From the sequence record MZ443783.1: a stretch of DNA of 64,000 bases; one strand, 5' to 3'. Positions 45,741 to 62,326 of the stretch are shown here, piece after piece. A program made the position numbers and the translations under genes. Under the pieces are notes generated by a model that ran no database searches, was not told the DNA's origin, and saw nothing but the letters and a program-made list of their open reading frames with translations. Positions within the stretch are counted from its first letter, which is position 1. Each line of letters begins with the position of its first letter.

Positions 45741-45747
45741 TCCTGCA

Positions 45748-46056: not shown

Positions 46057-46073
46057 TACTCCGTATCGACAAA

Positions 46074-46110
46074 AGAAAGGGAGAGCCGAAGCCCTCCCTA
46101 TGGTTAAAGC
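46074..46110 (-). terminator. intrinsic terminator (- strand)
   Basis: Reverse complement AGGGAGGGC-TTCG-GCTCTCCCT followed by TTCTTTT. Confidence 0.8.
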
Positions 46111-46343
46111 TGATCAGCGGTAATCTGACCGGCCTTATACAGTTCGCGCTTACGCTCTTTCCATGTGGACGTAAGTTCGGAGAAGAACTCTTTCATGCGG
46201 TCATCATCCAGCTCGAAAGGTTGATTCACTTCGTACTTACTGCACAGGTCGTTGAACGTAGTCGCATATTCCTGCTGTAGGAATGATTTTTCTGCGCTAA
46301 CACTGATATATTGCTGCGCCGAGAGTGCTACAGATACTTGCAT
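46104..46343 (-). CDS. small hypothetical protein, possibly a fibre chaperone
   Basis: AGAGG RBS; TAATTTAAGCGAGTCA upstream. Confidence 0.6.
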   Translation of the reverse strand: MQVSVALSAQQYISVSAEKSFLQQEYATTFNDLCSKYEVNQPFELDDDRMKEFFSELTSTWKERKRELYKAGQITADQL

Positions 46344-46377: not shown

Positions 46378-46977
46378 TCAAGCGAATTTCAAAACAAGGT
46401 CATTGACGATAACAGCTTTCGACTGGTCTGTAGGCGTTGTGTTGTTGGCGTACACTTTGCCTCCAACCAATCTCAAGTCTGCGTTGGAGTTTTCGTTACC
46501 TACAGAGCACACAGCAACGAACGACGCAGGTACCGAGGTAACACCAGTCTGTACGTTGATCGTCGCACTCGCACCACCGATGACGATACACCAAGTAGGC
46601 GTAGCATCTTTCGTGAAGTAAGAGGCGCGATAGTCAGAGTAGCTGGCACTGATACGCATGTTAAACGCCGAGGCCAACAGCACTGGAACGTTGTTAGCGT
46701 TCGTGGTCATTGCTGCTTTATTGCCAACCACACCGCCGACATAATCAGCAAGTCGTGAAGCGGTCAACAGGCCAGGGTTCATGTACGCTGCGTTCGTACC
46801 GGTAAGCTGAGTACCGTCACCAATCAAGCTGTTAAGTTCTGCTTTGGTTGGCATGGCCCCTGTATAAAACAGAATGGCGTTCGCAACGGCAGTGAAGTTC
46901 GAAGGCGCAGCAGAGTTCACCAGAGAACTGTACGCGTTACGCTGCATTGCGTTTGCAGTTGCAGGAAGCATTTTCAT
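46378..46977 (-). CDS. virion fibre-like paralogue, short form
   Basis: ILFYTGAMP..TPTW..SVGNENSNADLRLVGG..DLVLKF. Confidence 0.65.
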   Translation of the reverse strand: MKMLPATANAMQRNAYSSLVNSAAPSNFTAVANAILFYTGAMPTKAELNSLIGDGTQLTGTNAAYMNPGLLTASRLADYVGGVVGNKAAMTTNANNVPVLLASAFNMRISASYSDYRASYFTKDATPTWCIVIGGASATINVQTGVTSVPASFVAVCSVGNENSNADLRLVGGKVYANNTTPTDQSKAVIVNDLVLKFA

Positions 46978-47888
46978 TACACGCCCTCCAGGAAGTTATC
47001 TGCAATACGAATCGTCAGATCTGGGATAGCCATCTGACCGTACTGACCGATAGAAGGCGTGCCTACCGTAACGTCAGTGCCAATATCCAGCACAAGACCG
47101 TAATAGTCATCCTGTACTTGAGCGAGATAAGCCTGAGTTGTGGACGGGTTCGGTAGAGTCAGCGGCACCAGTACAACATGCGTCAAGGCAGCAACAACGA
47201 AGTCACTGCCTTTCTCTGCATACGGAGTGAAGTACATATCGTTGGTGGTTGCTGTTCCATTCAGGGTGATACGCAGTTTACGCGCAACAATGTCCAGACC
47301 ATCATTGATGCCAGCAACAACGGTGATGCGAGTCCACACAAGCGTCGTAGGATCTTGATACTCCAGACGAACGTTGCCTGCGTTAATGCCAGATACAGAC
47401 GGCACGAAGAACGAACGGAAACGGAGAGTACGCCCGTAGTCATACTCAACAGCATCGTTCGCACTCCAGCCGCTGCCAATATCGCTTGTGATATCAAAAG
47501 CTGCACCCACCATAGACATAATCTGCTGTGGTGTTTTGTTTATGCCAGAAGTAAGCGTGAAGCGGCTGTACTCTGGATAAACTGCGTAGGTCTGAATGCT
47601 CTGGCCCGATGCAGGGTCGAAGACTTTGCGCCCCTGACCATAGCCACCGATTGGTTGCAAACTACGGCCGCGAGAGTACACACGACATAAAGTGTTGTTT
47701 GCATCAGTGGTTTGTTGCTGATAGCGATACTCTACCGCACAGCGACTCGTCGCAACGAGATCGAGAAATGCTTTAGGCACGCTATTGCTGTTACCGTTGC
47801 GGAAGAAGGCCATGAAGCCATTCGTGTTCGCGCCAGTACCCGCAGTCTGAGTGAGCTGATATAGCGCCACTTTTTCAGAGACTAACAT
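46977..47888 (-). CDS. virion fibre-like paralogue with a discoidin-like insert
   Basis: VEYDYGRTL..RLEY..WTRI..RKLRIT; C-terminal IPDLTIRI. Confidence 0.6.
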   Translation of the reverse strand: MLVSEKVALYQLTQTAGTGANTNGFMAFFRNGNSNSVPKAFLDLVATSRCAVEYRYQQQTTDANNTLCRVYSRGRSLQPIGGYGQGRKVFDPASGQSIQTYAVYPEYSRFTLTSGINKTPQQIMSMVGAAFDITSDIGSGWSANDAVEYDYGRTLRFRSFFVPSVSGINAGNVRLEYQDPTTLVWTRITVVAGINDGLDIVARKLRITLNGTATTNDMYFTPYAEKGSDFVVAALTHVVLVPLTLPNPSTTQAYLAQVQDDYYGLVLDIGTDVTVGTPSIGQYGQMAIPDLTIRIADNFLEGV

Positions 47889-47897
47889 AATGCCTCC

Positions 47898-48431
47898 TTA
47901 GTATTTGATACGCAAGTCAGCGATGCGCAGAGGCTGGTTCATGGCAACAGTACCACCAACAATTTTCAGGTCAGCGTTAGAGTTCTCGTCGCCCACAGTA
48001 CCAGTGATGATGACGTAGGCGTTCGAACCAGTAGTGAAGCCTGCAAACGTATCAGCCGCAGAGGCAGTCTGAGCAAGACGCATCATGAACCACGTAGGAG
48101 TACCAGCAGCCGCAATCGTTGCCAAGTTAGCCTGAGCACTGAGCGGAATTTGCATGATATTGTTGTCCATGTCCATAACGATAGGCACAACGCCACACAT
48201 CACATCGCCAAGGAAATTCGCAGCAGTGGCAAACGCACTGATTGCCGATGCAGACCATGGCGCCGTAGTGGAAGCGGTGGTGATCATCGCACTCAACTGA
48301 GCGTCGGTCGGAGGTGTACCAGAAAACAGACCAACGTGAATCGTGTTGACGGCAGTGTTGCTGTTTGGAGGCATACGTTGGTTTAATGCAGCCATAGCCA
48401 TGAATGAGTTGTATGCTTTAGATATGCGCAT
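47898..48431 (-). CDS. virion fibre-like paralogue, short form
   Basis: Start MRISKAY at 48431; GLFSGTPP..GTPTWF..GTVGDENSNADLKIVGG..IADLRIKY. Confidence 0.65.
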   Translation of the reverse strand: MRISKAYNSFMAMAALNQRMPPNSNTAVNTIHVGLFSGTPPTDAQLSAMITTASTTAPWSASAISAFATAANFLGDVMCGVVPIVMDMDNNIMQIPLSAQANLATIAAAGTPTWFMMRLAQTASAADTFAGFTTGSNAYVIITGTVGDENSNADLKIVGGTVAMNQPLRIADLRIKY

Positions 48432-48432
48432 A

Positions 48433-49491
48433 TTAGTATGTCTCCAGTGAAATAGGCGTATAGGACACAGTGAACGAACCGACAGTTTGTTCCTGCCCTG
48501 GGTACGCTGTAGCATCCGCGATCAACAGGTCATAGCTTGAAGCCTGTTTCACATCATCCGTAATTGTCAGACCATAGTGAGGGAACCAACGACCATAGCT
48601 GTTCACGTTCATCGCCTGTGACATGGCTGGTATGCCATATGCAGTACCGAAACCGTGTGGGAACATGACAACGTGCTGCACTTTGCCTAAGGTGCGAGGC
48701 GCGGAGCCTGCTGCATAGTCACCGTAGAAGTGCAGAGCAAACGTACCAACACCGATGAAGAATGGGTTTGTTGCAGCCTTAGACACAATGCGGAAGCGAC
48801 GACCCTGAACGGTTGCAGGAAGCTGATAATACTTCTCAAAGTTACCAGAAGTCTGGAACAGGTTGGTGACTAGATTGGTCACATCCACCCATGAACTACC
48901 TTGCTGCACCTGCAAGAATAGCAAGTTAGCTGATGTATTGGCGAACAGGTTATTGTTCGCTGTAGTCTGTGTGATACTGGTCAGAGCGTTAATGACCACA
49001 TCGGCACCGAAGTCGTACTCGGCTAAAGTCCATGAACCTTCAGCGTTCTTGTTCTTAACGGTAGGAACGGAGGCACCTGAATTCGGGGCTGTACATGGCA
49101 TCTGAATTGCGGAGGTTGTTGATGCACAACGATGCCACAAAATAGTAGCGAACAGCATGTCCAGTTGATACTGCGCACTTGCGATCCCGGTATCAACAAG
49201 GTCTTGATACACAGTGCTGTAGCTGGCGAACGTTACTTTAGGCAAAACACGTTTTCCGCGATAGCCCTGAACCGTTGTCCAAGCAGGAGCGGGAGAAGAT
49301 TGCAGGCTAGTGGTGTTAGGAACCAGCGAGTGCTGCCCACCGCCAATCTGAGTCTGAATAAACGCACGACCACTGAGCATGTTGTTCAGAACGGTCTGCA
49401 TGTCGTAGTTCAAAGGGTTAGGAAGATTCCCTTCCATGAAAGCACCGTACATTACGGTAGGTGTATTTTGATAAATCGGTAGAATTTTCAT
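48433..49491 (-). CDS. virion fibre-like paralogue with a discoidin (F5/8-C)-like insert
   Basis: AEYDFGADV..LQVQQGSSWVDV..YQLPATVQGRRFRIV. Confidence 0.65.
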   Translation of the reverse strand: MKILPIYQNTPTVMYGAFMEGNLPNPLNYDMQTVLNNMLSGRAFIQTQIGGGQHSLVPNTTSLQSSPAPAWTTVQGYRGKRVLPKVTFASYSTVYQDLVDTGIASAQYQLDMLFATILWHRCASTTSAIQMPCTAPNSGASVPTVKNKNAEGSWTLAEYDFGADVVINALTSITQTTANNNLFANTSANLLFLQVQQGSSWVDVTNLVTNLFQTSGNFEKYYQLPATVQGRRFRIVSKAATNPFFIGVGTFALHFYGDYAAGSAPRTLGKVQHVVMFPHGFGTAYGIPAMSQAMNVNSYGRWFPHYGLTITDDVKQASSYDLLIADATAYPGQEQTVGSFTVSYTPISLETY

Positions 49492-49560
49492 ATCATGCCC
49501 TTGGTTTAAAGACAGTTCAAATTAATGAAGTGACGCCCACACTAGGACGTCACCCAAGAA

Positions 49561-50076
49561 CTACAGTTGGAGCGTCAGGTCGAGGAAGCGGTATGCTTGC
49601 CCGCTCTTAATCTGTCCACCAATAAACTGGAGTTCTGCATCAGAGCCTTGAGCACCAACAGTGCCTAGCCACACAGGTCCTGTAATACCAGAGCTGTAGT
49701 TGAAGCCTGCCCACGTGGCTGTAGCATTTGCTGGACAGATACGTGCGATGTAGTATGTAGGCGTACCGTCAGCAGCACCAGTAAGTGTACTTGCCATACC
49801 ACCTAGAGGCAGTGTGAGAGTGCGAGCCAATGCGTTAGGTTGAGGCGTCATTGCAGAACAAGCAACAGAACCTAAGAAGTCCGCCTGAACGGCACCCAGC
49901 GTAGTCAGAATGGTCTGGAAGTTCAGACTCGCTGTGCCTGCAATAAGGTCAAGCGCTTTACTCAACTGAGGGCGAGTGCCTTTGAACAGACCGATATGCA
50001 GCGTGTTCACTGCAATAGCCGATGCAGGAAATGCAGCACCTAATGCAACAAGTGATGCAGCTTTATTGTTAATCAT
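49561..50076 (-). CDS. virion fibre-like paralogue, short form
   Basis: GLFKGTRP..DGTPTYY..GTVGAQGSDAELQFIGG..FLDLTLQL. Confidence 0.65.
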   Translation of the reverse strand: MINNKAASLVALGAAFPASAIAVNTLHIGLFKGTRPQLSKALDLIAGTASLNFQTILTTLGAVQADFLGSVACSAMTPQPNALARTLTLPLGGMASTLTGAADGTPTYYIARICPANATATWAGFNYSSGITGPVWLGTVGAQGSDAELQFIGGQIKSGQAYRFLDLTLQL

Positions 50077-51152
50077 ACGCCTCTCCCTACTGCTGGCGAT
50101 AGCTTGGTGCGGAATGACGGTACATTGATAACGCCGAATGCCGTGTTGTAGCTCGCATCCTGCATGACGATATCATAGTTCGCAGCCTGCTTAATATCAT
50201 CAGTCACAGTAACGTGCAACATAGAACAGTAACGACTTTGGACAAGCGTAGGAACAACTGGTGCATTGAATGCCCAGGTTGTGCTCTGCGAGTAAGCAGC
50301 ACCTGCCTGCAATTGCAGCACCGTCATGTGTTTGAACTTGCCGAGTGTGCGTGGCTTCTGCCCTGTATACGTGGCGTAGAACTGCAAGCCAAACGGATAG
50401 TGCCCGAGAGTAGACCACGGCCATGACGTTGCTTTGTTCACGATACGGAACTTCTGCGCTTTAACCTTAGTAGGAAGTTCATACGTCACTACTTGGTTGT
50501 TCGTCACAGTACGCAGGTTGTCGTAGGTATGAATCACGTCAACCCATGCGCCGTTCACTTCTGCCTGCAAGTAAGTCTGGTTGGTACCCAGCAGCATCAG
50601 ACTTGAAACAGTAGAACCCATAGAATAACCTGCGAGAGCACCGAGTTCGATTTCGGCACCGAAGTCATACTCCGCACACAGATACCAGTTCTCTGCCGTC
50701 AGGCTATAGGCAGGACTCAGGTTGTTCGCAATACCAGACAGGAAGATATCTGACGTATTGTAGATGCGGTGTGCAAGCAAACAGGCAGCAACCGCTTCGA
50801 GATACGTGTTAACCGTGCTGGCGAAGCGCGGGTCAACTGACGGCAACTTGATCTTAGGAACGATGCGCGTCTTTGTGGAGAACGCAGGGCCGTAACCGTA
50901 AGTAGCGCCCGTGTATTCAATCCATGCAGGAAGAAAGTGCGAAGTATCGAGAGTCGAGATCGCATATGGCGTATACTGCCAACGACCAGGCGCTGTACCT
51001 TGCAGTGTGCGCACAAACAAACGCATAGCAATAGCGTCGTTGATAGCAGAGTGCAAAGTCTTCTCACCGTTTGCAGGAGCGTCCGTGTCATGCAGGAGCC
51101 CCAAACAGATTGCGGAAGACTGGCTCAACACTTGATAAGGAAAGAGTTCCAT
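50073..51152 (-). CDS. virion fibre-like paralogue with a discoidin-like insert
   Basis: Start MELFPYQ; AEYDFGAEI..LQAEVNGAWVDV..YELPTKVKAQKFRIV. Confidence 0.65.
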   Translation of the reverse strand: MELFPYQVLSQSSAICLGLLHDTDAPANGEKTLHSAINDAIAMRLFVRTLQGTAPGRWQYTPYAISTLDTSHFLPAWIEYTGATYGYGPAFSTKTRIVPKIKLPSVDPRFASTVNTYLEAVAACLLAHRIYNTSDIFLSGIANNLSPAYSLTAENWYLCAEYDFGAEIELGALAGYSMGSTVSSLMLLGTNQTYLQAEVNGAWVDVIHTYDNLRTVTNNQVVTYELPTKVKAQKFRIVNKATSWPWSTLGHYPFGLQFYATYTGQKPRTLGKFKHMTVLQLQAGAAYSQSTTWAFNAPVVPTLVQSRYCSMLHVTVTDDIKQAANYDIVMQDASYNTAFGVINVPSFRTKLSPAVGRGV

Positions 51153-51153
51153 G

Positions 51154-51732
51154 TTAGCTCCATGTGATATTGTTGAGACTGATAGTGCCGTTAAGGTTAA
51201 ACGTGCCATCACCGTTATCAGTCAAAGGAGCGCCCATAGCAATCAGGTCCTGAGGCGTTAGCTCAATCACCGACGCAATGGAAACAGTACCAGCAGCAAT
51301 GGCTGTCGCTGTAGTGCCGAGCAGAATATACATGCGGTTGAATGCTTTTGCATAGCTGAAACGACCGAGCAGATTCAACGTATCAAACATACGCTTGCCG
51401 TTACCCAGATTGACGATACGGATATTACCTGTAGAGATTGGAGCAGTGTCCATCACACAACCAGGCAGGTTCGCAGTCAAATATGTGCGTAGCGTGTTCA
51501 GGCTGAAAACAGCCAATAGCTGGTTGTTCCAGATCGTGTCCGTGATGATATCGCCGGTGGAGAACACGATAGCAGCCGGGCGTTCGGTACTGATAGTTGT
51601 GCCAGCCCCTTGAAGATTGCCAGCATTAGCGGAAGCCATTGTGCTGGCCATCCACGGTAGCTCAACGCCTGGGTTAGTCGTAGAGCCGAGCGATTCACCA
51701 CGCATGTTGAGCATAGCTTTTGAGATATACAT
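51154..51732 (-). CDS. virion fibre-like paralogue, short and divergent
   Basis: MYISKAM start like 47898; AIVFSTG; coupled. Confidence 0.55.
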   Translation of the reverse strand: MYISKAMLNMRGESLGSTTNPGVELPWMASTMASANAGNLQGAGTTISTERPAAIVFSTGDIITDTIWNNQLLAVFSLNTLRTYLTANLPGCVMDTAPISTGNIRIVNLGNGKRMFDTLNLLGRFSYAKAFNRMYILLGTTATAIAAGTVSIASVIELTPQDLIAMGAPLTDNGDGTFNLNGTISLNNITWS

Positions 51733-52637
51733 CAGTTGCTCCTCTGAGTGAAACGCAACTTAGGACAGTACATGATCGTCTTCTGTAGCGGGATGATATC
51801 GCCTACGATCTTGAATGGTCCCTGAGAACCCACAGCGTCCGCACAGTACATGATCTCATCCGAGTAATCAGTATCACCGTGAGTCAGCGTGTTGCAGTGA
51901 GCAAGCGCGGCCCATGTAGGAACAGTTGTTGGGCTGGACGAAGGCACATCGACAGAGGACAGCAAGATACGCATCATGCTACCGACAGTCGTGCTGGTGG
52001 ACTTGAAACGATACTTCTTGGACGCTCTCGGCGAGGACAGAGCCAACACAGTTGCATCACCAGTAATAGCGGTTGCAGTGCCTAACGTAGTTTCAGTCAG
52101 ACCGTCATCGGATAACGCGACTAACTGGAATCCATCAGACACGGTGCCATTGAACTTCAAGTGCGTCACAGTCATAGGGCTGTCGAACTCAACGTCAACG
52201 CTCTGGCCGCCAAATCGCGCAGCAGGAACCAGCGTACTACCAGAACCTACAACTAACCCGATGCTACGATCAGTGAAGCCTGAACGAGTAATACGATGAG
52301 GCAGAAGCTGATAAACCACAGTATTAGCGCTGCCAACGGTCCCATAGTATGATGCCCCTTTAGGAATATACTGAGACTGTAAGGCAAGAGTGAGAACGTT
52401 CCCAGACTCCACACCGCTAATCGGATTACGAATCATACCAATAGAGGTATTATACATGTCAGCGAGTGACTTGTTATTGAAGGCGGCATCAAAGCCTTCT
52501 TTCGACGTAGGCAGTTTGCCACTGAATGCGAAGATGTTCCACCCAGCACCGATATTCGGGTCGTTTACCAGTGCTGCGGTATTCGCGTTAGTGCCCATCA
52601 TTGCCTGCGCCATGATGCGGTTATTAATAATCTTCAT
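51732..52637 (-). CDS. virion fibre-like paralogue with a discoidin-like insert
   Basis: IFAFSGKLP; VDVEFDSPMTVTHL..SKKYRFK; VPTWAAL; AVGSQG. Confidence 0.6.
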   Translation of the reverse strand: MKIINNRIMAQAMMGTNANTAALVNDPNIGAGWNIFAFSGKLPTSKEGFDAAFNNKSLADMYNTSIGMIRNPISGVESGNVLTLALQSQYIPKGASYYGTVGSANTVVYQLLPHRITRSGFTDRSIGLVVGSGSTLVPAARFGGQSVDVEFDSPMTVTHLKFNGTVSDGFQLVALSDDGLTETTLGTATAITGDATVLALSSPRASKKYRFKSTSTTVGSMMRILLSSVDVPSSSPTTVPTWAALAHCNTLTHGDTDYSDEIMYCADAVGSQGPFKIVGDIIPLQKTIMYCPKLRFTQRSN

Positions 52638-53092
52638 TAGCTCACCACCGGCACAGCAGATTTGTTGTTCGCTTTAGTGTCAGACAGGTCAAGCGCACCA
52701 ACAGTTACACGGAAGACGATGTTATCAAACAGCGGATCAATCGACTGCGTTGTAGCGAACTGGCCGCTAACGAGAGGCACGTCGATACGAGGTGCAGCCA
52801 GGTTAGACGTGAAGCTACGCGCCATAAACTTACTGACTACCTGACCAACAACGAGGCCCACCAGCGCGATTTGATCGATGCTTGAAATTTGAGTGCGTTG
52901 AATCCAGGACAAGCGACCTTGCGTATATGCAACTTGTGCAACGTCCGCAATCTGCTTGGCGTTGATAGCCGAGACAGATTCGTTTGTCACACGCTTCTGG
53001 GGCTGCGAGTCAGAACTAACTTCAATCTGAGACATAACGAACACGAAGTCCGCAAACATGTCCGGGTCATACGTTACGACTGGTACGAACAT
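52637..53092 (-). CDS. probable virion protein, short form
   Basis: C-terminal VTVGALD; coupled within the array. Confidence 0.5.
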   Translation of the reverse strand: MFVPVVTYDPDMFADFVFVMSQIEVSSDSQPQKRVTNESVSAINAKQIADVAQVAYTQGRLSWIQRTQISSIDQIALVGLVVGQVVSKFMARSFTSNLAAPRIDVPLVSGQFATTQSIDPLFDNIVFRVTVGALDLSDTKANNKSAVPVVS

Positions 53093-53094
53093 GA

Positions 53095-54186
53095 TTAGGC
53101 TCCTTGTCTCACGCGGTAGTTGTTGATGATTGGCGTGTACGCCACATTGGCCTGTGCTCCGTAACCGCCCTGAATGGAAATGCTTGTGGCAACAGGCTTA
53201 ACGATAGTGTAGGTGAATTGATCCACCTGCTGATCGTCAATGTACACTGTATGTGTTGACGTTGCTGCATCGTACACATACTTGATATGCACAACACTAC
53301 CACTCCATAAGGCTGCGAACGGTGAAATAGGTCGCGTGACTTTTGGAGGAGTACCGCCTCCAGCGGAGTTGTTCCAGATAAGCAGGCCTTTCTCATTCGA
53401 ACGGTCAAAGGCGATTGTCAAACGGTTGGCAGTCGATGCCCAGAGACTGAACAGAGACCATTCAGCATAGTCAGAATTGCCTGACTGATGGTAATCACAT
53501 TCGATTGTGAATGACTTGCTGCAATCGAATCCCGTGGCGGTGGCGGTGGTGACAACCCCGGTCGTTCCAAGATCGAGGCCTGAACCGTCTGCTGCAAGTT
53601 TCGTGTTACCCGTCACGGTAAACGCGTTGCCTACGAGGTCAGTGAATGCGCCTGTGTTAGCAGTGCTTGACGTGATCGCAATAGACTCTGAACCTGTCAG
53701 CCAAGTAATGCCTTCGCTCTCTGTCCACATCCGAGTCAGACCGATAGTGAATGCGTTGATCGTTACCTGAGTCTTATAACCATTCGGGTCATAGCGGACA
53801 ACAAGGTCAGGGTAGAGCAGAGTAACGTCTGGCCCAACCTGTAAGCACACTGGCAAGATGCCACCGAGAATAAGGTGAGTAGGAACGCCTTCGGCAGTAG
53901 CGGTCAACTGGCAATCAGAAATAGACAGCTTAGTGCGATCGATAGTACGAACGCAGTTAGTGCCTTTCGCCAGCACGGTGCAGATGCCGCTAGACGCAGC
54001 AAGCGCAGCATCGAACATGTAACCCGCACCAGTCTGAGGCTGATAATTAAGGCATTTGTTCAGGTCAGCCTCAACGAATCCGCTATTCAGTTTCACCAGA
54101 TAGCAGGACTTATCGTCTGCCGTTGCCTGAGCGAATAGACGCGTCAACTGAGGCACGACAGAGTTTGCAAATAACTTGTAGTTCAT
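53095..54186 (-). CDS. fibre-like protein with a C-terminal LamG/concanavalin-A-like domain
   Basis: Start MNYKLF; ATAEGVPTH scaffold; FTIECDY..VHIKYVYD..TVYIDDQQV..INNYRV. Confidence 0.65.
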   Translation of the reverse strand: MNYKLFANSVVPQLTRLFAQATADDKSCYLVKLNSGFVEADLNKCLNYQPQTGAGYMFDAALAASSGICTVLAKGTNCVRTIDRTKLSISDCQLTATAEGVPTHLILGGILPVCLQVGPDVTLLYPDLVVRYDPNGYKTQVTINAFTIGLTRMWTESEGITWLTGSESIAITSSTANTGAFTDLVGNAFTVTGNTKLAADGSGLDLGTTGVVTTATATGFDCSKSFTIECDYHQSGNSDYAEWSLFSLWASTANRLTIAFDRSNEKGLLIWNNSAGGGTPPKVTRPISPFAALWSGSVVHIKYVYDAATSTHTVYIDDQQVDQFTYTIVKPVATSISIQGGYGAQANVAYTPIINNYRVRQGA

Positions 54187-54187
54187 G

Positions 54188-55144
54188 TTATACCTCGGTG
54201 GACAGACGAAGCTGGGCGACAGAAGCGAACTCACCAGGACCGAGAGCCGTAGCTAACAGTTCGATTGGCTTGCCGCTACCGATAGCCCCTACTTCACAGG
54301 CGAAGTAAGTTGGCACATAGTTACCATTTGCCAGAGCACCGTAGTTGGTGTCCTGAATGACAACGATTGCACTGCGCATTGTTTTGTATGCTGCGTTTCT
54401 GCCTACGTCGGATGCAGTTACAGGAAGCACTCGGCGCGTACCAGAAGTTTGAATGAAACGGAAGCGCTTAGACGACTCGGTAGGAGTGGCCAGCACGTTA
54501 CCTTCTTGGTTAGCAGCAAGAGTCCATGCGCGAGCAGTACCGACGACACCAGCACCATCAATAGGGGCAACAGTACCTGCCGCAGCAGAAGTCATATCAC
54601 CAACGTCAGACAGCACAGCGTCGATAGTGACTTCATTATCGAAGGTCAGGTCAGTAGTTGACAGATGAATACCTGGCATGAGTGCATCATGAGGAATCCC
54701 TGCATAGTCCCACGGTCTGTACCCAGCAGCACCGATACCCCACAGCGCTTTGTTGCCTGCGTCATTACTGGTGTTATACGCTGTCTGAATCTGAACCGAA
54801 GCCGCACCGTTATAACCGACAGGAGTTGCTTTAGATGGATAGTGAACAGTCGCTCCGTTCTTAATCTCATATACATGACCAGAACGTGCTTTCCACCCTT
54901 CTTGACGATCCATAAGAGGCAGCAGACCTTCGGTGGTTGGCCACAGAGTCAAACGAGTAACCGCAACAGCATTGTCGAACAGTTTTCGCATGTCCAGCAG
55001 ATGCTGAGAGAAATCGCCTTGATCAGCAATCGCTGTGTCAAAGAAGAACACGTTAACAGTCTGACCGTTTGCTACGTTCGATGCCCAACCAGAGCCTTGG
55101 CTGAGTACACTGAACGGCAGTAAGTTGTGTCCTAAGATACGCAT
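54188..55144 (-). CDS. virion fibre-like paralogue with a discoidin-like insert
   Basis: VFFFD; LTFDNEVTID..SKRFRF; EVGAIGSG. Confidence 0.6.
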   Translation of the reverse strand: MRILGHNLLPFSVLSQGSGWASNVANGQTVNVFFFDTAIADQGDFSQHLLDMRKLFDNAVAVTRLTLWPTTEGLLPLMDRQEGWKARSGHVYEIKNGATVHYPSKATPVGYNGAASVQIQTAYNTSNDAGNKALWGIGAAGYRPWDYAGIPHDALMPGIHLSTTDLTFDNEVTIDAVLSDVGDMTSAAAGTVAPIDGAGVVGTARAWTLAANQEGNVLATPTESSKRFRFIQTSGTRRVLPVTASDVGRNAAYKTMRSAIVVIQDTNYGALANGNYVPTYFACEVGAIGSGKPIELLATALGPGEFASVAQLRLSTEV

Positions 55145-55641
55145 TAGAACTCCTTAGAATCTTTGACAACGGTAGCGAGGAACTTACCGTTACGCAGGTT
55201 AGCTGAGGTCAGAATCAAGTCTGCACCAGAGCCAGCAGCGCCGATAGTTAGAATCAGGAAGCCGCCGTACGGAGTGCTTGCGATATCTTTGTTGAAGACA
55301 ATCACGTTGTACGTGCTCAACAGAGTTGTTATATCACCCGCAAAAGTACCTTGCAGCGTAGCAGCCAGGCGGAACTTGTACTTGTTATCTTGACCATGAA
55401 TCCAACGCACAGGGTTTGTGCTAACTGAGGTCAAGTCGAGGACAGCAGTTGCACCAATAGCAGTCTGAACCGTGGTACCGTCAGCAACGACGATGTTTGC
55501 GGGGTCAGGTACTTTGGCTAAACAGATTGTCTTCTGCATGTTAGACAGGCCGTACTTCAATGGCGGATCAGAAGCAGGACGTTTTCCCGCATCTGGAATC
55601 GTAATGCCATTGGCAACCAACGGGAAAGAAACTATTTCCAT
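55144..55641 (-). CDS. virion fibre-like paralogue, short form
   Basis: LTIGAAGSGADLILTSANL; TAATTT 34 nt upstream. Confidence 0.6.
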   Translation of the reverse strand: MEIVSFPLVANGITIPDAGKRPASDPPLKYGLSNMQKTICLAKVPDPANIVVADGTTVQTAIGATAVLDLTSVSTNPVRWIHGQDNKYKFRLAATLQGTFAGDITTLLSTYNVIVFNKDIASTPYGGFLILTIGAAGSGADLILTSANLRNGKFLATVVKDSKEF

Positions 55642-55700
55642 TATGATATCTCCAGGTTGTTTCGAGAATAAATTACTGACAACAAAGGTTCACGTAGGAC

Positions 55701-56750
55701 TCAACAGCGAACGGTGCGACCTATTGTCAGAGGTGTGTAGTCTCGCAGCGTAGCTACAGGCTTCTCATTGGGTAAAATGGCTGAGGCCACATCGAAGTCG
55801 ATACCAGCTCTTGCAGTCAGCACATAGATAGGTGCACCGTAAGCAAACGCTATTGGCATTGCGCCCCACGTGATCGAGTACGCAGGCGTATCGGCATGAG
55901 AGCCTTGACCGTAGTAGAAAAGACTTGAAGCAGCGACACTAGCCTGCGCACCCGCATAGTATGAAGTGCTATAAGTCCAGCCACCACCAGAGAAGTAGGT
56001 CGTGCCGTTGACGACAGACCTGAACGGCTGGAACAATCGTGGACCACGAGCGAAGCTATAGGCAGTGTGATCATACGGCTGATTGGCTGTTATGTACGGC
56101 ATACTTTGCGCAGACGAAACTAAAAGCGCAGTGTCTGCCTCTCTGTTCACGTTATTGAAACCGATGTGCTGCAAATACGAAGTGGTGCTACGCGACCAGT
56201 AGCCTATGCCGCTACCGCCTCCTCCGTATATGGTGCCAGACTCGGATAGCGATGGGTTTGCACTTGATGCAGGCGTTGAGTAGAGTGAAACACTGTATGA
56301 GGTACTGTCGAACGACGGCAGCACCATGTCAGAGTAAGCTGGGACGGTTGGCGTGCCATTACCGTAAGTGTCGAGCAAGCTACCAGAACCATTAAGTGCG
56401 CCACCGCCTGTGTCATCTTTGCCTATAGCGTAGTATCGACAAAAGGCGTTGAATGCAGTCATGTTGCGCTGCTGGTTGTTGTAGTTGAAATCAGACTCCT
56501 TACGAACACCAGGCACATAGTTATAGAACAACTTGTTGCCAGACCAACCAGCGCCACGCACACACTGCATGTTGTTGTCTACATCGACGGCCGCACAAAA
56601 AGAAAGTGACGTGTTTATCTTATCCCACATATCAATGAAGGATGATTTGTCAGTGGGTCGAGGAGTATCGTCAGAAAATAAAAACATACGCTTACGTGCA
56701 AATTCTATCTTCTTCTCCAGCAGTTGTGCTCCGTTCGAAACGAATAGCAT
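55701..56750 (-). CDS. virion fibre-like paralogue, MLF.. subfamily
   Basis: MLFVS..MFLFSD..GNKLFY; S/G/Y-rich. Confidence 0.6.
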   Translation of the reverse strand: MLFVSNGAQLLEKKIEFARKRMFLFSDDTPRPTDKSSFIDMWDKINTSLSFCAAVDVDNNMQCVRGAGWSGNKLFYNYVPGVRKESDFNYNNQQRNMTAFNAFCRYYAIGKDDTGGGALNGSGSLLDTYGNGTPTVPAYSDMVLPSFDSTSYSVSLYSTPASSANPSLSESGTIYGGGGSGIGYWSRSTTSYLQHIGFNNVNREADTALLVSSAQSMPYITANQPYDHTAYSFARGPRLFQPFRSVVNGTTYFSGGGWTYSTSYYAGAQASVAASSLFYYGQGSHADTPAYSITWGAMPIAFAYGAPIYVLTARAGIDFDVASAILPNEKPVATLRDYTPLTIGRTVRC

Positions 56751-56758
56751 AATCGCCT

Positions 56759-57709
56759 CTATAGCTTGATACTGTCTGTCTTATACAGAACGGGTAATTC
56801 AGGTAACGTAACAGAGAACGTATTCCCTACGTTTGTGTTACGCGAGGTGAAGTCTTCTGGACCGTACTTAACAACGCGGACGCGAGTTCCTTCGTTGATG
56901 AATACGGCGAATTTGTCTAACGTGATTGTACCTTCTGCAAGCGTACTCGAACCATATGCCTGGGAACAAGGGGTGTATCGTCCGCTGTCATAGACATTAC
57001 GACGAGCAGGAACCGTAGCACGCCAGTAACCGCCATCAGACACTTGAGCAGTGTATGTTCCCATAGAGAAAGCCATGGCGCCAGTCACGCTGGAATTCCA
57101 GTTGGAGTAGTTAGTGCCCGTGAATGTATACGTCCAACTATGCGGATATATGCGAATCTCTTGCATACCCGCGGCAGTGTATACTCGACGACGATGACTG
57201 TATGAGTCACCTGTCTGCCTGCCTGCTGTCGATACAGTTACTTGCGTGTCAGGGAACGATACCTGATTGGCGGTTGGACCTGCCTGCTGTCCTATCTTAG
57301 TAGGAATCAAACAGAAAGGCGTAGCCCACCACGTATCAGTATTTCCCGGAAAAGGCGTATTGCTTGAGAAGTTATCGTTCATTGCCATTTGACTGCTCTT
57401 GCGGCCAGACCCATCTTTCAGTCCGGTCACAAGTAACGTTCGGAAGATGCCGTCATCGGATGTAAAGTCCGGCGCCTCCGATATCATGGTCAATTTGGAG
57501 TAATAGACTCTTGCCTGAGTGCCATAAGCAGCGATGCCCATAACAGGATGGGCGCCAAAGCTGTTACCGTTCTGAGAAGCAATTGAGCATCGACTATTTC
57601 GTATCAGATCTCGTAGCTCACTCACTGAACTGAAATCTAGGGTCTGTCCGGAGTCGAAAAAGAATCCGTACTTGCGCACATCATCCTGTTTAGGAAGTAC
57701 GAGTTGCAT
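56759..57709 (-). CDS. virion fibre-like paralogue
   Basis: GFFFDS N-terminus; C-terminal VTLPEL. Confidence 0.55.
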   Translation of the reverse strand: MQLVLPKQDDVRKYGFFFDSGQTLDFSSVSELRDLIRNSRCSIASQNGNSFGAHPVMGIAAYGTQARVYYSKLTMISEAPDFTSDDGIFRTLLVTGLKDGSGRKSSQMAMNDNFSSNTPFPGNTDTWWATPFCLIPTKIGQQAGPTANQVSFPDTQVTVSTAGRQTGDSYSHRRRVYTAAGMQEIRIYPHSWTYTFTGTNYSNWNSSVTGAMAFSMGTYTAQVSDGGYWRATVPARRNVYDSGRYTPCSQAYGSSTLAEGTITLDKFAVFINEGTRVRVVKYGPEDFTSRNTNVGNTFSVTLPELPVLYKTDSIKL

Positions 57710-57718
57710 AACCTTTCC

Positions 57719-58771
57719 TTACATCTGGGTGAGAGATTTGTCGGGGAAGAATTGCGTGCTAGCCAAAGACAAAGTGGCTGTTGCAGCTACAGGTATTGCA
57801 GCACTTTGCGACATATCTTTGTCTTGACCGATAGCACAACGCACTAGGTATTTCAGGCCGTTGACTTGAAACGCCATCATACAGGCAGTCAGGATAGCAT
57901 CTGCCGTGTTCGCTTTGCCTGAGATAGGAACTCTCGGAGGGAACGCATCAGGACTTGTGCGAGTATAGCCTGATACACCGTTACCATTCTGCGGTGTACT
58001 GGTGCTACTGAACTGATTTAAGCCGTTGGCAGAATATGTCATGCCCACAGTACGCACAAATGCAATGTGGTCTATTGCTGCATACGAGTTATGTAGCGGC
58101 GCAGTCTGCATAGGCGTGGTTGTCTGGCTTATGTATGAATATCCGTAAGGACCTGATTCATTCCACGAGACAAGACTTAACGTGGCGGTGTTGAAGCCTG
58201 CATCGTACCCGCTATACGTTCCCCAGAAAGGGTCAGTGTTACGCGCATACTGGTTACCTACTTTAGAGCTGTAAGTTTGCAGATGCGTGTTAACGTTACG
58301 CATACCCTCAGGGAAGATGAGCATACAGTTAGACGGCCAGTAATATGATTCAGAACTATCAGCAGACCTACCAAAACGCCCATCGAACACAGGCATGCCC
58401 GCAGACCATTGATATCCAGGAGTGTCTGCATCGTACACAGTAAAGTAACGAGCAAGAATAGCATCGGGAGTTTGTGCAGCACTGTAGGCAGCATACCCTC
58501 CAGACACAGCACTATTGTTTACTAGGCGAGCACTTCGCGCAGGATAGAAGAAGTTATCTTTGATCCCACTCATAGGGCTTAACGTGACTTCGCTTCCTAC
58601 GCCAGACGCCGAGTTGCCCCAAGCGCGAGCGCCTTTAATCTTCGACAGATAACTGGACACGCTGACATGGGCATCAGAGATATCTGTCTGACTATCAAAG
58701 TAAAGCGCACGGTGTGCAGCCAACAGCGCAACCTTGTTGGCCTTTATTGGATGAGATGTTGCAAATAACAT
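57719..58771 (-). CDS. virion fibre-like paralogue, MLF.. subfamily
   Basis: MLFAT..LYFDS..SGIKDNFFY. Confidence 0.6.
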   Translation of the reverse strand: MLFATSHPIKANKVALLAAHRALYFDSQTDISDAHVSVSSYLSKIKGARAWGNSASGVGSEVTLSPMSGIKDNFFYPARSARLVNNSAVSGGYAAYSAAQTPDAILARYFTVYDADTPGYQWSAGMPVFDGRFGRSADSSESYYWPSNCMLIFPEGMRNVNTHLQTYSSKVGNQYARNTDPFWGTYSGYDAGFNTATLSLVSWNESGPYGYSYISQTTTPMQTAPLHNSYAAIDHIAFVRTVGMTYSANGLNQFSSTSTPQNGNGVSGYTRTSPDAFPPRVPISGKANTADAILTACMMAFQVNGLKYLVRCAIGQDKDMSQSAAIPVAATATLSLASTQFFPDKSLTQM

Positions 58772-58782
58772 AGGGCCTCTCC

Positions 58783-59877
58783 CTATAATAAATATGTGGC
58801 CGCAGCATTTGCGTAGGCAACAACGTCAGCAGAGAAATTCAAGGAGGCCATCTCTGCTATGTTGGTTCCTGTCTGTCTTGCATCCTCTGCTTCACCGTCC
58901 CCGATAGAAAGAACAATCAGCCCTTTGTCTAAAGGGTACTCATACGCAATCGCAGCAAACGACAATACGCACGGAGGACTGTCCTCAGAGGCGACCTTCA
59001 TAGGTACATACAGAGGTTCAGCTATACCACAGTTGGGAAAATCAGACAACGTAGGAGAGTACGAGAAGCGAACGGTACCTCCGCCTATAGGCCACATCTG
59101 AGTTTCTTCCTGAACAGCAATGAACATGATGCAAGGCGCATTGGTCATATACATAGACGGACTCACTACAGGCAGCGTGTTACCTTGACCGTATTGCTTG
59201 GTCGTGTCCGTAGTAGTCAGGTCAGTTTGCGTCTGCAACGTGTTAGTTTGCGTAAGATAAGCCGCGCTCGACCAATACAGGGTGTACTGATAGTTCCATC
59301 CTAGCCATGAGTTTGACTCATACTTGGAGATGTTTATCGTCTGCCCATTGAACGTCAAGTTGGCACGAATACCACCAGTGGCCGCAACGCGCATAGAAGC
59401 AAGGATAGACTCAGGAACAAAGTACATCCTGTTGGTTACTATGCCTGACGTAGGAGAATATGTCTTACCTGCACCAGCACCCAAGAAGTTAGTCTTCAGG
59501 TCACTCATGCTGCCTTTGGCCGTAGTGGGGGTCACAGTTACATAGCGATAGGCCTGTGTGTCAACAGTCTGACCATCATTCGTTGATGGATAGTAGTACC
59601 AATCCTTGCTATTACTATTCTGATTGAACCCAAGCATGTCTGATGTATGTGCAACGTAGTGCTTGTTGTTCTTAATACCCGACAGTGCGGTTGTCTTCCC
59701 ATTAGAGCCTGAGAATCCCCATGAGGTGCCGCGACAGTATGGAACACTCTTTAGCAGGCCAGTTCTGGATTGCTTTACGGTCGCTTTGTCCACTGACGAA
59801 TCAAAGAGAAACAGTGCAGACAGCGCGTCCTTGCGTATCTTATTAACCTTAACAGCTCCGACAGAATGAAACTGCAT
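58783..59877 (-). CDS. virion fibre-like paralogue, MLF.. subfamily
   Basis: LFLFDS..SGIKNNKHY; C-terminal LSIGDGE. Confidence 0.6.
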   Translation of the reverse strand: MQFHSVGAVKVNKIRKDALSALFLFDSSVDKATVKQSRTGLLKSVPYCRGTSWGFSGSNGKTTALSGIKNNKHYVAHTSDMLGFNQNSNSKDWYYYPSTNDGQTVDTQAYRYVTVTPTTAKGSMSDLKTNFLGAGAGKTYSPTSGIVTNRMYFVPESILASMRVAATGGIRANLTFNGQTINISKYESNSWLGWNYQYTLYWSSAAYLTQTNTLQTQTDLTTTDTTKQYGQGNTLPVVSPSMYMTNAPCIMFIAVQEETQMWPIGGGTVRFSYSPTLSDFPNCGIAEPLYVPMKVASEDSPPCVLSFAAIAYEYPLDKGLIVLSIGDGEAEDARQTGTNIAEMASLNFSADVVAYANAAATYLL

Positions 59878-59912
59878 ACACGCACCTTTATGTCAAAATT
59901 TTCTGTATAAGG

Positions 59913-59945
59913 TAAAAAGGGCCCGTACCATTACGATACAGGCCA
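59913..59945 (-). terminator. intrinsic terminator (- strand)
   Basis: Reverse complement GGCCTGTATC-GTAAT-GGTACGGGCC followed by CTTTTT. Confidence 0.65.
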
Positions 59946-59951
59946 TTTCTG

Positions 59952-60533
59952 TTACACCAGCAGACGACCTGCGATGGTAATAGCAACGCCGTTGAGCGTA
60001 GTGTCCGCAGTGTCTGGTGCAATGACACGCAACTGGTCACCAGATACAAGAATGATCTCTTGATCTTGGTACGCAACCAGAGGAGCAAACACGCCTGTCT
60101 TCGAACCCGCAGCGAACGACACGGTACCAAGCTGAATAACAGTCTGGGTAGCCGAATCATACGCACTGATTTTGAAAACAGATGCAGCAGTGGCAGCAAT
60201 GTCCGCAGCAGCCATAGAACCAGCAAAGTTTTTAACGATTGCAGTTGTGCGAACAGACAGGTAACGCGCAATCTCCTGACCACCAGCATAACGCTTTAGG
60301 ACAGACAGACCTACGTCATATGGATTTACAGACTGGAGCTGATTAACCCACTTATTACGAACCTGACTGAACACGTAAAGTCCAGGCTGGTTTGCACCAA
60401 CAACTGCGGTCAGGTTCCATACACGCCCGTTAGTAGGGCTAGAAGGAAAGGTAGGGCCGGAGGAGTTTGGATCGCCTGGTGCACGAACGATTTGAGCCTG
60501 CTCACCCGCGAGCTGTAGACCATAAGTTAACAT
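59952..60533 (-). CDS. probable virion protein
   Basis: GGAGAG RBS; beta-rich; inside the structural block. Confidence 0.6.
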   Translation of the reverse strand: MLTYGLQLAGEQAQIVRAPGDPNSSGPTFPSSPTNGRVWNLTAVVGANQPGLYVFSQVRNKWVNQLQSVNPYDVGLSVLKRYAGGQEIARYLSVRTTAIVKNFAGSMAAADIAATAASVFKISAYDSATQTVIQLGTVSFAAGSKTGVFAPLVAYQDQEIILVSGDQLRVIAPDTADTTLNGVAITIAGRLLV

Positions 60534-60544
60534 TGTTTCTCTCC

Positions 60545-60763
60545 TTAGGCGATTCGCACTTCACCCGTAACTGGGTACGGGAAAGTCACTTTGACTGTAT
60601 TGTTATCCACAATGATAACGTCGAGCGGCAGTACCTGATGGAGTTTACCGTCAGGTTGCATCGTACACGTAGTCACTGCGACCATACGACCGAAGTTGTG
60701 CGTAATCGTCCATTCAGCAGCAGGCGTTTCTTGTTTGAAAGAGCGCCCCATCGAATAGTTCAT
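60545..60763 (-). CDS. single-module WxxxHNLG-type protein
   Basis: GAGGA RBS before ATG 60763; WTITHNFG..DNNTVKVTFPYPVTG. Confidence 0.6.
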   Translation of the reverse strand: MNYSMGRSFKQETPAAEWTITHNFGRMVAVTTCTMQPDGKLHQVLPLDVIIVDNNTVKVTFPYPVTGEVRIA

Positions 60764-60770
60764 AAGTTCC

Positions 60771-61673
60771 TCACAATTCATATGTGTATTGTGGTGTAGG
60801 CACGTTGATTTGTACCGTACCGTTTCCATTCATCACAGGAACAGCTTGCACAATTTCTGACTCGGCAAGCAGGGCAATATGCAGCGTCTTCTTCTCGTCA
60901 ACGATTGCAGCCATTCCCCATGTAGGAACAGAGACACCCGGTGTTCCACCTGTTATAGCGTGATAAAGATTTGGCACACCCCAGTACAAGGAAAAGTAGT
61001 TCCCTCCAGAGTTGTTGTAATTCACAACCCTTGCGACCGCAGAATAAGACATTGCGGCAGCAGAGATCGCGTTACCGACAACAACTTGATATCCGTTACT
61101 GTTCCATGAAAAGCCATTACCGGCAATCGTAGGAACTGCATCCAGAGTAGGAGGGTACGTGTACAGCATCATACTTGTGCCGTACATCGTATTACCCTGT
61201 TGTGCGTTCAGCAGATCAGTTGACATGATAGGCAAGGTCTTATTTATACCATGCGCGGCCAAAGCCATAGGCCCGGACGACGGACTACCACTCAACATCA
61301 TACCCAAATCATCAATCAGATTGAGAGCGAACTGACGCTCCATATATCGGTAGCTTGGGGTGGTGGGTGCATTCACAGGTGCAAGTGATCCTGTGACAAC
61401 ACCTCGGTTGCTCGTCCATGTATGATAGATATACCGCGTGTGCAGCCACTGTTTCGTACCATCGGCGCTAATACCAGCCGCAGGGTTTAGAGATATCGTA
61501 CCGTTAACGGCGAAATCCTTTGCGCTCGTAACGGACTTCTCGGCACACAATTTCACGAAGTCTGTCCAAGTAAGAATGCTCAGGTCCGGTTTTGGCGTAG
61601 ACGCATCAAACAGGAACAGACCGCGCTCTATCATATGCTTTTTAACACTACGGTAGTTTTGTGCGAAAAGCAT
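60771..61673 (-). CDS. virion fibre-like paralogue, MLF.. subfamily
   Basis: MLFAQ..LFLFDAS..VPTWG. Confidence 0.6.
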   Translation of the reverse strand: MLFAQNYRSVKKHMIERGLFLFDASTPKPDLSILTWTDFVKLCAEKSVTSAKDFAVNGTISLNPAAGISADGTKQWLHTRYIYHTWTSNRGVVTGSLAPVNAPTTPSYRYMERQFALNLIDDLGMMLSGSPSSGPMALAAHGINKTLPIMSTDLLNAQQGNTMYGTSMMLYTYPPTLDAVPTIAGNGFSWNSNGYQVVVGNAISAAAMSYSAVARVVNYNNSGGNYFSLYWGVPNLYHAITGGTPGVSVPTWGMAAIVDEKKTLHIALLAESEIVQAVPVMNGNGTVQINVPTPQYTYEL

Positions 61674-61684
61674 ATGATTACCCC

Positions 61685-62281
61685 TTAGTACAGAACGACT
61701 GTACCAGTTTCAGGGTTTTCGAAAGTGATCGTAAGCTGACTGGTGCTGTCATGCACGATAGACTTCGGCTGGACTTCTTTAGCGCCCTGATAGATACGCA
61801 CCGCTGGGTTGTAGCCCAGGTTGTGAGTAACTACCCACACGGTCTCGTTGGTGAACGATGCAGTGAACGCTACGGTAGGAGCAGGCAGACCGCTCTCAAT
61901 ACCAGACAGCAGCACAGCCGTACCAGCGACAGGTTCAGGGAACATAACGATAGTCGTGTTTGCATCCTGAGTGTGAATGGAGGAAGGCATAACAACGTCA
62001 CCGTTTGAATCGTAGCACTGAACAATAGGCGTACCCGTGTTCATGTTGTGCGCGATCTCCCAGCGGCTTGAAGCAGACGCCTGAGAGTAACGGTACATCG
62101 TCATCTGTTGAGTTAACGGTACCCAGATAGGCAGGTCAGCGATCTCAACACAGAACATCAGTCGCTTGTCCATGAAGATTGCCATGCCAGGCTGAGGGTT
62201 GTCTGGCCAGTCTTGCACTTCTTCGAATTTGAAGTTCTTGATCGAGCCAAACTCTAAGTCTAAAGTCCCAACGACTTTCAT
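61685..62281 (-). CDS. virion protein with two WxxxHNLG modules
   Basis: WEIAHNMN..DANTTIVMFPEPVAG and WVVTHNLG..QLTITFENPETG. Confidence 0.65.
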   Translation of the reverse strand: MKVVGTLDLEFGSIKNFKFEEVQDWPDNPQPGMAIFMDKRLMFCVEIADLPIWVPLTQQMTMYRYSQASASSRWEIAHNMNTGTPIVQCYDSNGDVVMPSSIHTQDANTTIVMFPEPVAGTAVLLSGIESGLPAPTVAFTASFTNETVWVVTHNLGYNPAVRIYQGAKEVQPKSIVHDSTSQLTITFENPETGTVVLY

Positions 62282-62298: not shown

Positions 62299-62326
62299 GT
62301 AAAAAGGGCAGGCAGATGCCCACCCC
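62299..62326 (-). terminator. intrinsic terminator (- strand)
   Basis: Reverse complement GGGTGGGC-ATCT-GCCTGCCC followed by TTTT. Confidence 0.65.

Follow-up and report, generated by a model that had tools for sequence, protein, structure and literature searches.

What is encoded by 19 adjacent genes that are labelled 'hypothetical protein' in every deposited genome of their phage clade? The DNA analysed here (the window, 64,000 nucleotides) corresponds with 100% identity to bases 1-64000 of MZ443783.1, the record of Erwinia phage pEa_SNUABM_28, an Alexandravirus with a genome of 267 kb that infects Erwinia amylovora. Positions 46378-61673 of the window carry 19 tightly packed minus-strand coding sequences with the locus tags 00081-00099 (here g81-g99). 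An earlier inspection of the letters alone (the original prediction) had described this region as about 17 paralogous fibre-like genes with a shared scaffold and swappable lectin-like inserts. In our judgement it is fairly probable that the array represents an expanded and diversified set of arm-segment proteins (also known as garland proteins or as connectors of the baseplate wedge 3-tail fibre network, BW3TFN) of the type of T4 gp8, A511 gp105 and phage 812 gp118. The best-supported part of this interpretation is that at least 11 of the genes, and possibly 16, descend from the arm-segment module, and the array probably builds the host-adhesion apparatus of the phage.

Organization of the array

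All 19 genes have an ATG start preceded by a Shine-Dalgarno-like GGAG/AGGA motif, and no broken genes were seen. They are arranged in four blocks (g100-g97, which includes the neighbouring gene g100, g96-g93, g92-g85 and g84-g81), with a spacing of -4 to 11 nt inside the blocks and of 59-74 nt between them; within short-long pairs, the genes overlap or are separated by gaps of 1-2 nt. As described in the original prediction, short (S) and long (L) genes alternate from g81 to g92 (S L S L S L S L S L L S) and are followed by the four long genes g93-g96, after which come g97, g98 and g99. The S/G/Y-rich character ascribed to the four long genes turned out to be modest, with serine, glycine, tyrosine and threonine together making up 34-36% of g93-g96, 31% of g99 and 22-33% of the other array genes. 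The features of the array, in window coordinates, are as follows.

46378..46977, minus strand: g81, 199 aa, short scaffold protein, family A (BLASTP and hhalign to g83 and g85; phrog_17152)
46977..47888, minus strand: g82, 303 aa, long form, family B, scaffold at both ends, middle domain homologous to the one in g84/g86
47898..48431, minus strand: g83, 177 aa, short scaffold protein, family A, modelled reference
48433..49491, minus strand: g84, 352 aa, long form, family B (AlphaFold 2 model; jackhmmer with bridging sequences)
48712..49044, minus strand: predicted discoidin/CBM32-like domain in g84, residues ~150-260, inserted (Foldseek, sub-cut-off Pfam)
49561..50076, minus strand: g85, 171 aa, short scaffold protein, family A (hhalign to g83 99.9%)
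50073..51152, minus strand: g86, 359 aa, long form, family B, g84 paralogue (BLASTP 1.8e-31; hhalign 100%)
51154..51732, minus strand: g87, 192 aa, short, scaffold fold by structure comparison only
51732..52637, minus strand: g88, 301 aa, long form, family C, insert of ~190 aa flanked by scaffold halves
52637..53092, minus strand: g89, 151 aa, short, in the alternating series, synteny conserved, no scaffold link found
53095..54186, minus strand: g90, 363 aa, scaffold-like N-domain (~1-155) plus appended C-domain
53098..53721, minus strand: putative ConA-like/LamG-type C-domain of g90, residues ~156-363 (Laminin_G_3 in orthologues)
54188..55144, minus strand: g91, 318 aa, long form, family C (hhalign to g88 94.4%, 239 columns)
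55144..55641, minus strand: g92, 165 aa, short scaffold protein, best-conserved array member
55701..56750, minus strand: g93, 349 aa, family D (hhalign to g96 99.4%, g95 95%, g94 94%)
56759..57709, minus strand: g94, 316 aa, family D (jackhmmer seed uniting g93, g95, g96 and the g99 N-terminus)
57719..58771, minus strand: g95, 350 aa, family D
58783..59877, minus strand: g96, 364 aa, family D, missing from several relatives
59952..60533, minus strand: g97, 193 aa, conserved neighbour, non-member (own family phrog_22757; PaBG gp260 orthologue)
60545..60763, minus strand: g98, 72 aa, one copy of a ~60-aa domain, non-member
60771..61673, minus strand: g99, 300 aa, distant family D member via its N-terminal ~90 residues

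Sequence relationships among the array proteins

Direct comparison connected few of these proteins. By BLASTP only g81/g83/g85, g84/g86, g95/g96 and g98/g100 were linked, a Pfam scan at E <= 0.1 gave no match for 20 proteins of g81-g101 (all except g98, which lay outside the scan), and PHROGs places nearly each array gene in a separate family of unknown function. Searches with jackhmmer confined to the clade converged on small separate families, and a shallow profile-profile comparison gave weak cross-links only. When per-gene profiles built from ~30 syntenic loci were compared all against all, reversed alignments used as decoys scored no higher than 23.1 in 420 comparisons; among the 210 real pairs, 25 had scores of 25 or more and joined 15 genes in one graph.

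The relationships became clearer through proteins of divergent arrays in phage NCTB and metagenomic contigs, used as bridging jackhmmer seeds against a database of all open reading frames of 35 loci and an equal number of reversed decoys. These searches united g82, g84 and g86 with g88 and g91 near full length, and four of the bridging seeds also recruited the short forms (g81, g83 and g85 by all four, g92 by three), in each case with zero decoys. The gene product g82 was recruited near full length from the seed L037_4891_5883, aligned with g84 at 95.5% (hhalign) and, when its middle segment was used as a query, recruited g84/g86. For g92, a search from g83 residues 101-177 recovered 21 of 21 orthologues at 3.6e-12 with no decoys, and hhalign against the deep family-A profile gave 89.6%; mean identity among g92 orthologues is 74-79%. 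The deep profile itself (171 sequences from 139 clusters, among 1.84 billion representatives) matched g92 (6.7e-7), g88 (1.3e-4, split matches) and g91 (1.2e-3, on the C-terminal part), the best decoy reaching 5.3e-2. In the best-scoring g88 orthologue (298 aa) the split hidden Markov model (HMM) match covers residues 29-55 and 174-269. Segment-wise hhalign reached 91.8% at the N-terminus of g88 and 69.9% at the C-terminus of g91, with two colinear matches in g88, one at each end, and a further profile search agreed with these results. On this sequence evidence, g81-g86, g88, g91 and g92 are one superfamily of nine genes, and the split profile matches indicate that the scaffold of its long members is interrupted by an insert.

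The motifs that had been read from the sequence are real. In an alignment of 22 short-family sequences, twelve columns besides the start methionine are invariant (G38, P41, T111, P112, T113, V146, G147, S151, A153, G159, G160 and D172 in g83 numbering), and all of them fall within those motifs.

The four long genes g93-g96, together with g99, form a family of their own, family D, recovered by jackhmmer from g94 (g99 residues 11-99 at 7e-19); by hhalign, g99 reaches 32.8 to g93 and 30.2 to g96. Their membership in the scaffold superfamily is possible. The N-terminal profile of family D matches the long-form superfamily with scores of 27-30, just above all decoys (at most 23), the corresponding link of g93 scoring 27-29 against a decoy maximum of 18, and colinear, non-significant matches also fall on the C-terminal motif. 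Set against these matches is a serious alternative, to which we give somewhat less than an even chance, namely that only families A, B and C and g92 (with g87 and g90) derive from the arm segment, and that family D is an unrelated, fast-evolving set of proteins for receptor binding or fibre tips, which has no more than a short attachment module at the N-terminus in common with the others. This would agree with the absence of family D from all jackhmmer runs seeded by other families, with segment-wise profile scores against the scaffold at decoy level, and with the fact that family D is the least conserved part of the array, its copy number ranging from 0 to 5 across relatives (none in Yersinia phage fHe-Yen9-02). 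The N-terminal unit also occurs without the rest of the scaffold, as seven tandem copies of the ~55 N-terminal residues of the short form, spaced ~65-70 residues apart, in residues 542-1005 of the metagenomic protein P0233. This helix-strand-helix unit therefore seems to be a separable module, which may explain why family D shares that part alone.

For the remaining genes no such connection emerged. No scaffold link was found for g89 by HMMER, hhalign or Foldseek, nor for g97 by profile comparison. Sequence-based attempts to add family D, g87, g89 and g90 to the superfamily were unsuccessful or did not rise above the decoys, and a g99-seeded run that recruited decoys was discarded. A domain of ~60 residues is common to g98, g100, the C-terminus of g101 and the C-terminus of the product of tag 00106. 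The latter (L001 26506-27333) bears the PHROG/RefSeq label 'HNH endonuclease', apparently a mis-annotation, given the matches of its N-terminus to tail-protein families. The proposed number of about 17 paralogues was thus too high: profile alignment finds a common scaffold in nine genes, g87 and g90 are added by fold, family D stands apart with a weak link, and g89, g97 and g98 fall outside.

Predicted fold of the scaffold

AlphaFold 2 models were made for two proteins, g83 and g84, and three fold searches were performed. The g83 model (predicted local distance difference test [pLDDT] 88.2, predicted template modelling score [pTM] 0.82) has an N-terminal helix followed by strands, with the recurring motifs on or next to the strands. 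In a Foldseek search of the Protein Data Bank (PDB), its sole significant match was 9rkv_A (E 3.8e-4, probability 1.0, target template modelling score [TMt] 0.57), a 139-residue chain of the entry 'Agrobacterium phage 7-7-1 tail fibers'. The published map of these fibres contains long and short fibres together with gp014, a small garland protein that forms homodimers (PMC12796354), and the chain is presumably gp014, judging by its size. Lower matches included phage 812 (9fko/9euf) and A511 gp105 (6hhk), with E 0.5-1.7 and TM 0.25-0.28. In sequence searches of the PDB, the best match of a 60-sequence short-family profile was 44nx chain B (147 aa, 'Structural protein'; E 0.098, not significant); its aligned stretches are colinear with all three conserved motif regions, and it could be a solved relative.

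Against BFVD, the g83 model matched a 207-aa Yoloswag model of the size of the g81 orthologue gp70 and a 171-aa Alexandra model of the size of the g85 orthologue (E 1e-13, TM 0.85). It also matched models of the size of g87 orthologues (Yoloswag, 186 aa, E 7.8e-4; JA13, 197 aa, E 2.7e-3; probability 1.0) and of g90 orthologues (JA13, 339 aa, and Yoloswag, 351 aa; probability 0.97-0.98). It is through these fold matches of orthologue models that g87, whose sequence link to the scaffold is weak (segment hhalign 12.6%), and g90 would join the superfamily.

The comparison with solved virion proteins shows both likenesses and differences. Like phage 812 gp118, A511 gp105 and T4 gp8, g83 is small, begins with a helix that leads into beta strands, and is encoded within a baseplate/fibre module, although it shares no sequence similarity with them and superposes at the low TM values given above. 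In those systems a single gene supplies several copies per arm, and dimers along an extended scaffold chain carry the receptor-binding proteins, whereas the present phage has 11-16 diverged paralogues, half of them with extra domains. The garland proteins gp125 and gp127 of phage Milano, which have the fold of T4 gp8 and A511 gp105, form dimers and an apparent beads-on-a-string filament (PMC10811340). They are two paralogues with ~30% identity, possibly homo- or heterodimers, wrapping the distal fibre ends, and so parallel the paired paralogues described here, but 7-7-1 and Milano have only one or two bare genes, devoid of lectin-type domains. In the jumbo phage Goslar (Chimalliviridae), gp32 forms the baseplate 'spokes' (PMC13742148), filaments of gp8-like homodimers joined end to end that link the inner and peripheral baseplate; unlike the array, this is one gene, forming homodimers, in an unrelated lineage. 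The term 'fibre-like' used in the original prediction is therefore misleading, since the matches point to bead-like modules of the gp8/gp105 type and not to trimeric fibre proteins.

In phage 812, six arm-segment dimers per arm are joined by scaffold linkers through C-terminal strands (PMC13433997). The g83 model has a C-terminal strand at residues 173-176, next to the invariant D172 and including the nearly invariant K176 (22-sequence alignment), and this strand would fit a dimer-joining role of the same kind.

Domains carried by the long forms

The g84 model (pLDDT 87.5, pTM 0.88) gave 18 PDB matches with E <= 0.001, the best being the CASPR2 discoidin domain (3.9e-5, probability ~1.0), and all of them were discoidin, neuropilin b1, factor VIII C2, CBM32 (several as galactose complexes) or galactose-binding modules. 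The discoidin-type matches cover residues ~150-260, with E 3.9e-5 to 2.5e-3 and TM 0.4-0.5 on the target. The Pfam family F5_F8_type_C (PF00754) matched 7 of 26 family members below the cut-off at residues ~152-245, the best orthologue scoring 24.3 bits against a gathering cut-off of 28.2; no Pfam match to this family was obtained for g84 itself. The model thus indicates that g84 carries a domain of the discoidin/F5/8 type C/CBM32 fold inserted in the scaffold. Homologues of this g84 domain form the middle of g82, g86, g88 and g91 (jackhmmer, profile comparison). The g90 protein instead has an appended C-terminal domain: Laminin_G_3 (PF13385, ConA-like) was found in two of eight orthologues (best E 7.7e-5), while g90 itself gave no Laminin_G_3 match in Pfam and its profile no sequence match in the PDB. 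The orthologue of g90 in Yersinia phage fHe-Yen9-02 (L009 12603-13055) is a protein of 150 aa that consists of the scaffold only, without the C-domain. JA-like phages carry fusions of 523-737 aa in which a family-C long form is joined to a g90-type ConA-like domain (L008 10387-11961, JA11_080; also L027-L030 and L035).

Three elements of the original prediction can be judged from these data. An insert between scaffold halves is found in g88 and g91 by split HMM matches and in g84 by the model, with a discoidin fold, but not in g90. The description 'lectin-like' is valid at the level of fold for g84 and, by homology, for the middles of g82, g86, g88 and g91, and is weaker for g90; any sugar binding is putative. 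The notion of swappable inserts retains little support, namely a few domain rearrangements among relatives and the g90 C-domain, which is more variable than its N-domain (41 vs 64% identity). The other inserts are about as conserved among orthologues as the scaffolds, and hypervariability as a general statement was rejected.

There is a direct precedent for this combination. The protein Gp119 of Bacillus phage Vp4 unites a gp105-like baseplate wedge 3 module with two carbohydrate-binding modules (CBMs) and binds host cells (PMC11406892), which it was shown to decorate. Gp119 is a single protein of 831 aa with appended CBMs, whereas here the domain is inserted in the scaffold and spread across many paralogues. 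The kind of module is thus known, and the array is unusual in its copy number, in the insertion within the scaffold and in its paired arrangement.

Distribution among related phages

The array is syntenic in more than 30 related genomes and contigs; Alexandravirus, Sasquatchvirus (Y3), Yoloswagvirus, Salmondvirus (JA11) and Yersinia phage fHe-Yen9-02 share its gene order. Phage NCTB, which comes from marine or surface water and belongs to the same wider group, possesses an array of 16 short and long scaffold genes adjoining a tail-assembly gene (L031 785-14456, BN7874_183-198), which indicates that this type of array is old and extends beyond enterobacterial hosts. A metagenome scan for further arrays yielded eight loci, and shorter arrays are present in two metagenomic jumbo-phage contigs. 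In the long proteins of the distant arrays the family-A profile matches the N- and C-terminal ends and the B/C profiles match the middles. Short-long pairing is maintained throughout the clade, with two or three A-B pairs per array, and to some extent in NCTB. No array homologues were found outside this lineage.

This distribution bears on another possibility, which we regard as unlikely though deserving attention, that the array builds hair-like appendages on the tail sheath instead of baseplate arms. The hairs would then be long, flexible, lectin-studded filaments of heterodimeric gp8-like beads, each pair with a different lectin-type domain. The relatives Y3, AD1 and JA11, which carry the same array, have been described as 'hairy Myoviridae' with hair-like appendages along the tail (PMC6143709, PMC13282480), the hairs of Y3 and CBB have no assigned gene, filament formation is known for gp8-like dimers, and the array is large enough to encode an abundant extra structure. 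Nevertheless, every solved homologous module is located at the baseplate periphery and none on the sheath, CBB is hairy yet belongs to another lineage, outside the range of array homologues, and no link was seen between the presence of hairs and array content; a description of the morphology of pEa_SNUABM_28 was not found in the literature. If the array did encode the hairs, these would be phage appendages of a new kind that capture host surface polysaccharide multivalently, derived from a repurposed and multiplied baseplate-arm module.

Genomic context and association with the virion

The array forms the 3' end of a ~60-kb co-oriented block that begins with the major head protein. It is preceded on this strand by g101, tail-fibre proteins, other virion structural proteins, a tail protein of 1511 aa and PAAR, and further upstream by the genes for baseplate, sheath, tube and major head protein. 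The array is thus part of the baseplate/tail-fibre module, directly downstream of and co-oriented with tail-fibre and virion structural genes, and its place at the end of the gene run from the major head protein to g101 marks it as the tail end of the late structural block. The two genes that adjoin it on this side are as follows.

61685..62281, minus strand: g100, 198 aa, family E, neighbour outside the finding, PaBG gp258 orthologue
62355..63980, minus strand: g101, 541 aa, virion structural protein (phrog_16122), heading this part of the block

The g101 orthologue is PaBG gp257 (HMM 9e-85), which was present in purified virions by mass spectrometry (PMC7412058 Table 1). Two other PaBG proteins detected in virions by mass spectrometry, gp261 (L032 19078-20070, 34.8 kDa) and gp263 (L032 23111-23638, 18.9 kDa), occupy the syntenic position of the array and may represent a non-orthologous replacement at this locus.

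Downstream of the array are the small membrane and lipoprotein genes g77-g80 (44974-46343, minus strand, tags 00077-00080). The g77 product resembles a unimolecular spanin in its lipoprotein signal and in the membrane segment at its C-terminus; g78 carries a membrane segment at the N-terminus, and g79 has a multi-pass, holin-type look. PHROGs labels g77 as 'lipoprotein' only and no endolysin adjoins g77-g80; the label 'lysis-proximal' for the g81 end of the array is plausible. GC-rich hairpins with T-runs occur on the minus strand in the larger intergenic gaps (59920-59944, 49528-49555, 62306-62321 and 46078-46099). Three of the four block-splitting gaps hold such a terminator-like hairpin, the other hairpin being situated between g80 and g79. 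Possible functions are termination or processing within the late operon.

The vicinity of these membrane/lysis-like genes, together with a literature search that brought up no proteomic evidence for virion association, would suit an explanation in which the array proteins are not virion components but late lectin-like proteins acting in or on the infected cell (assembly, envelope, polysaccharide). We consider this very unlikely, as a signal peptide or membrane segment is annotated on no array protein, except for one orthologue label, the fold matches are to virion proteins, and the array lies within the structural block. The virion-appendage role advanced in the original prediction accordingly receives indirect support from the fold of the short scaffold and from the position of the genes.

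Assessment of the arm-segment interpretation and proposed mechanism

Several points weigh against a derivation of the array from arm-segment proteins. The matches to the classic family (6hhk, 9fko and 9euf) are weak and a single solved chain is significant, the equation of that chain with garland protein gp014 being drawn from its length and the text of the paper. Searches of the PDB by sequence with profiles of families A, B and D and of g90, as well as g101 and g97, gave nothing significant. The structural basis consists of the g83 and g84 models, with family D, g87, g89 and g90 outside it, and the Foldseek matches of the g84 model are confined to the insert, so that the scaffold part of the long forms depends on sequence evidence. 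PaBG gp261 and gp263, considered as array homologues, were rejected, since they have no detectable homology, and the literature yielded neither virion proteomics nor a structure for this clade. Finally, dimerisation, heterodimer pairing, filament formation and sugar binding are steps that we infer, as we do virion location and the link to hairs.

If the array does descend from arm-segment proteins, its products can be arranged in a tentative scheme. In solved myoviruses, dimers of one such protein are beaded along an extended baseplate wedge or arm-scaffold chain and make up the peripheral arms, spokes or garland to which the receptor-binding proteins are attached. Here, g81, g83, g85, g87 and g92 would be bare short forms, g82, g84, g86, g88 and g91 long forms with a discoidin/CBM32-like domain between the N- and C-terminal parts of the scaffold, and g90 a form with an appended ConA-like domain. 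Translationally coupled short-long neighbours might assemble into heterodimers of one bare and one lectin-bearing protomer, as suggested by the coupling and by the conservation of the pairing from Erwinia phages to NCTB; the heteromer idea derives from this gene pairing and coupling. Different pairs would follow one another along a heteromeric arm, garland or filament on the baseplate or tail, with the C-terminal strand connecting each dimer to the next by beta-sheet augmentation, as in phage 812. The numerous domains of carbohydrate-binding type could then provide multivalent, low-affinity binding to host surface polysaccharide, and family D is probably part of the same apparatus.

Implications

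Recognition of the module gives names and testable structural roles to ~6% of the 267-kb genome (~15 kb) and points to the host-adhesion apparatus locus of these phages, whose clade includes many jumbo phages under development against fire blight and soft rot. It also supplies concrete candidate genes for the hair-like tail appendages, the protein make-up of which was declared unknown for CBB in 2017 and which were still described in purely morphological terms in a 2026 review. On the arm-segment interpretation, the array illustrates how duplication, domain insertion and pairing can turn one structural module into a diverse set.

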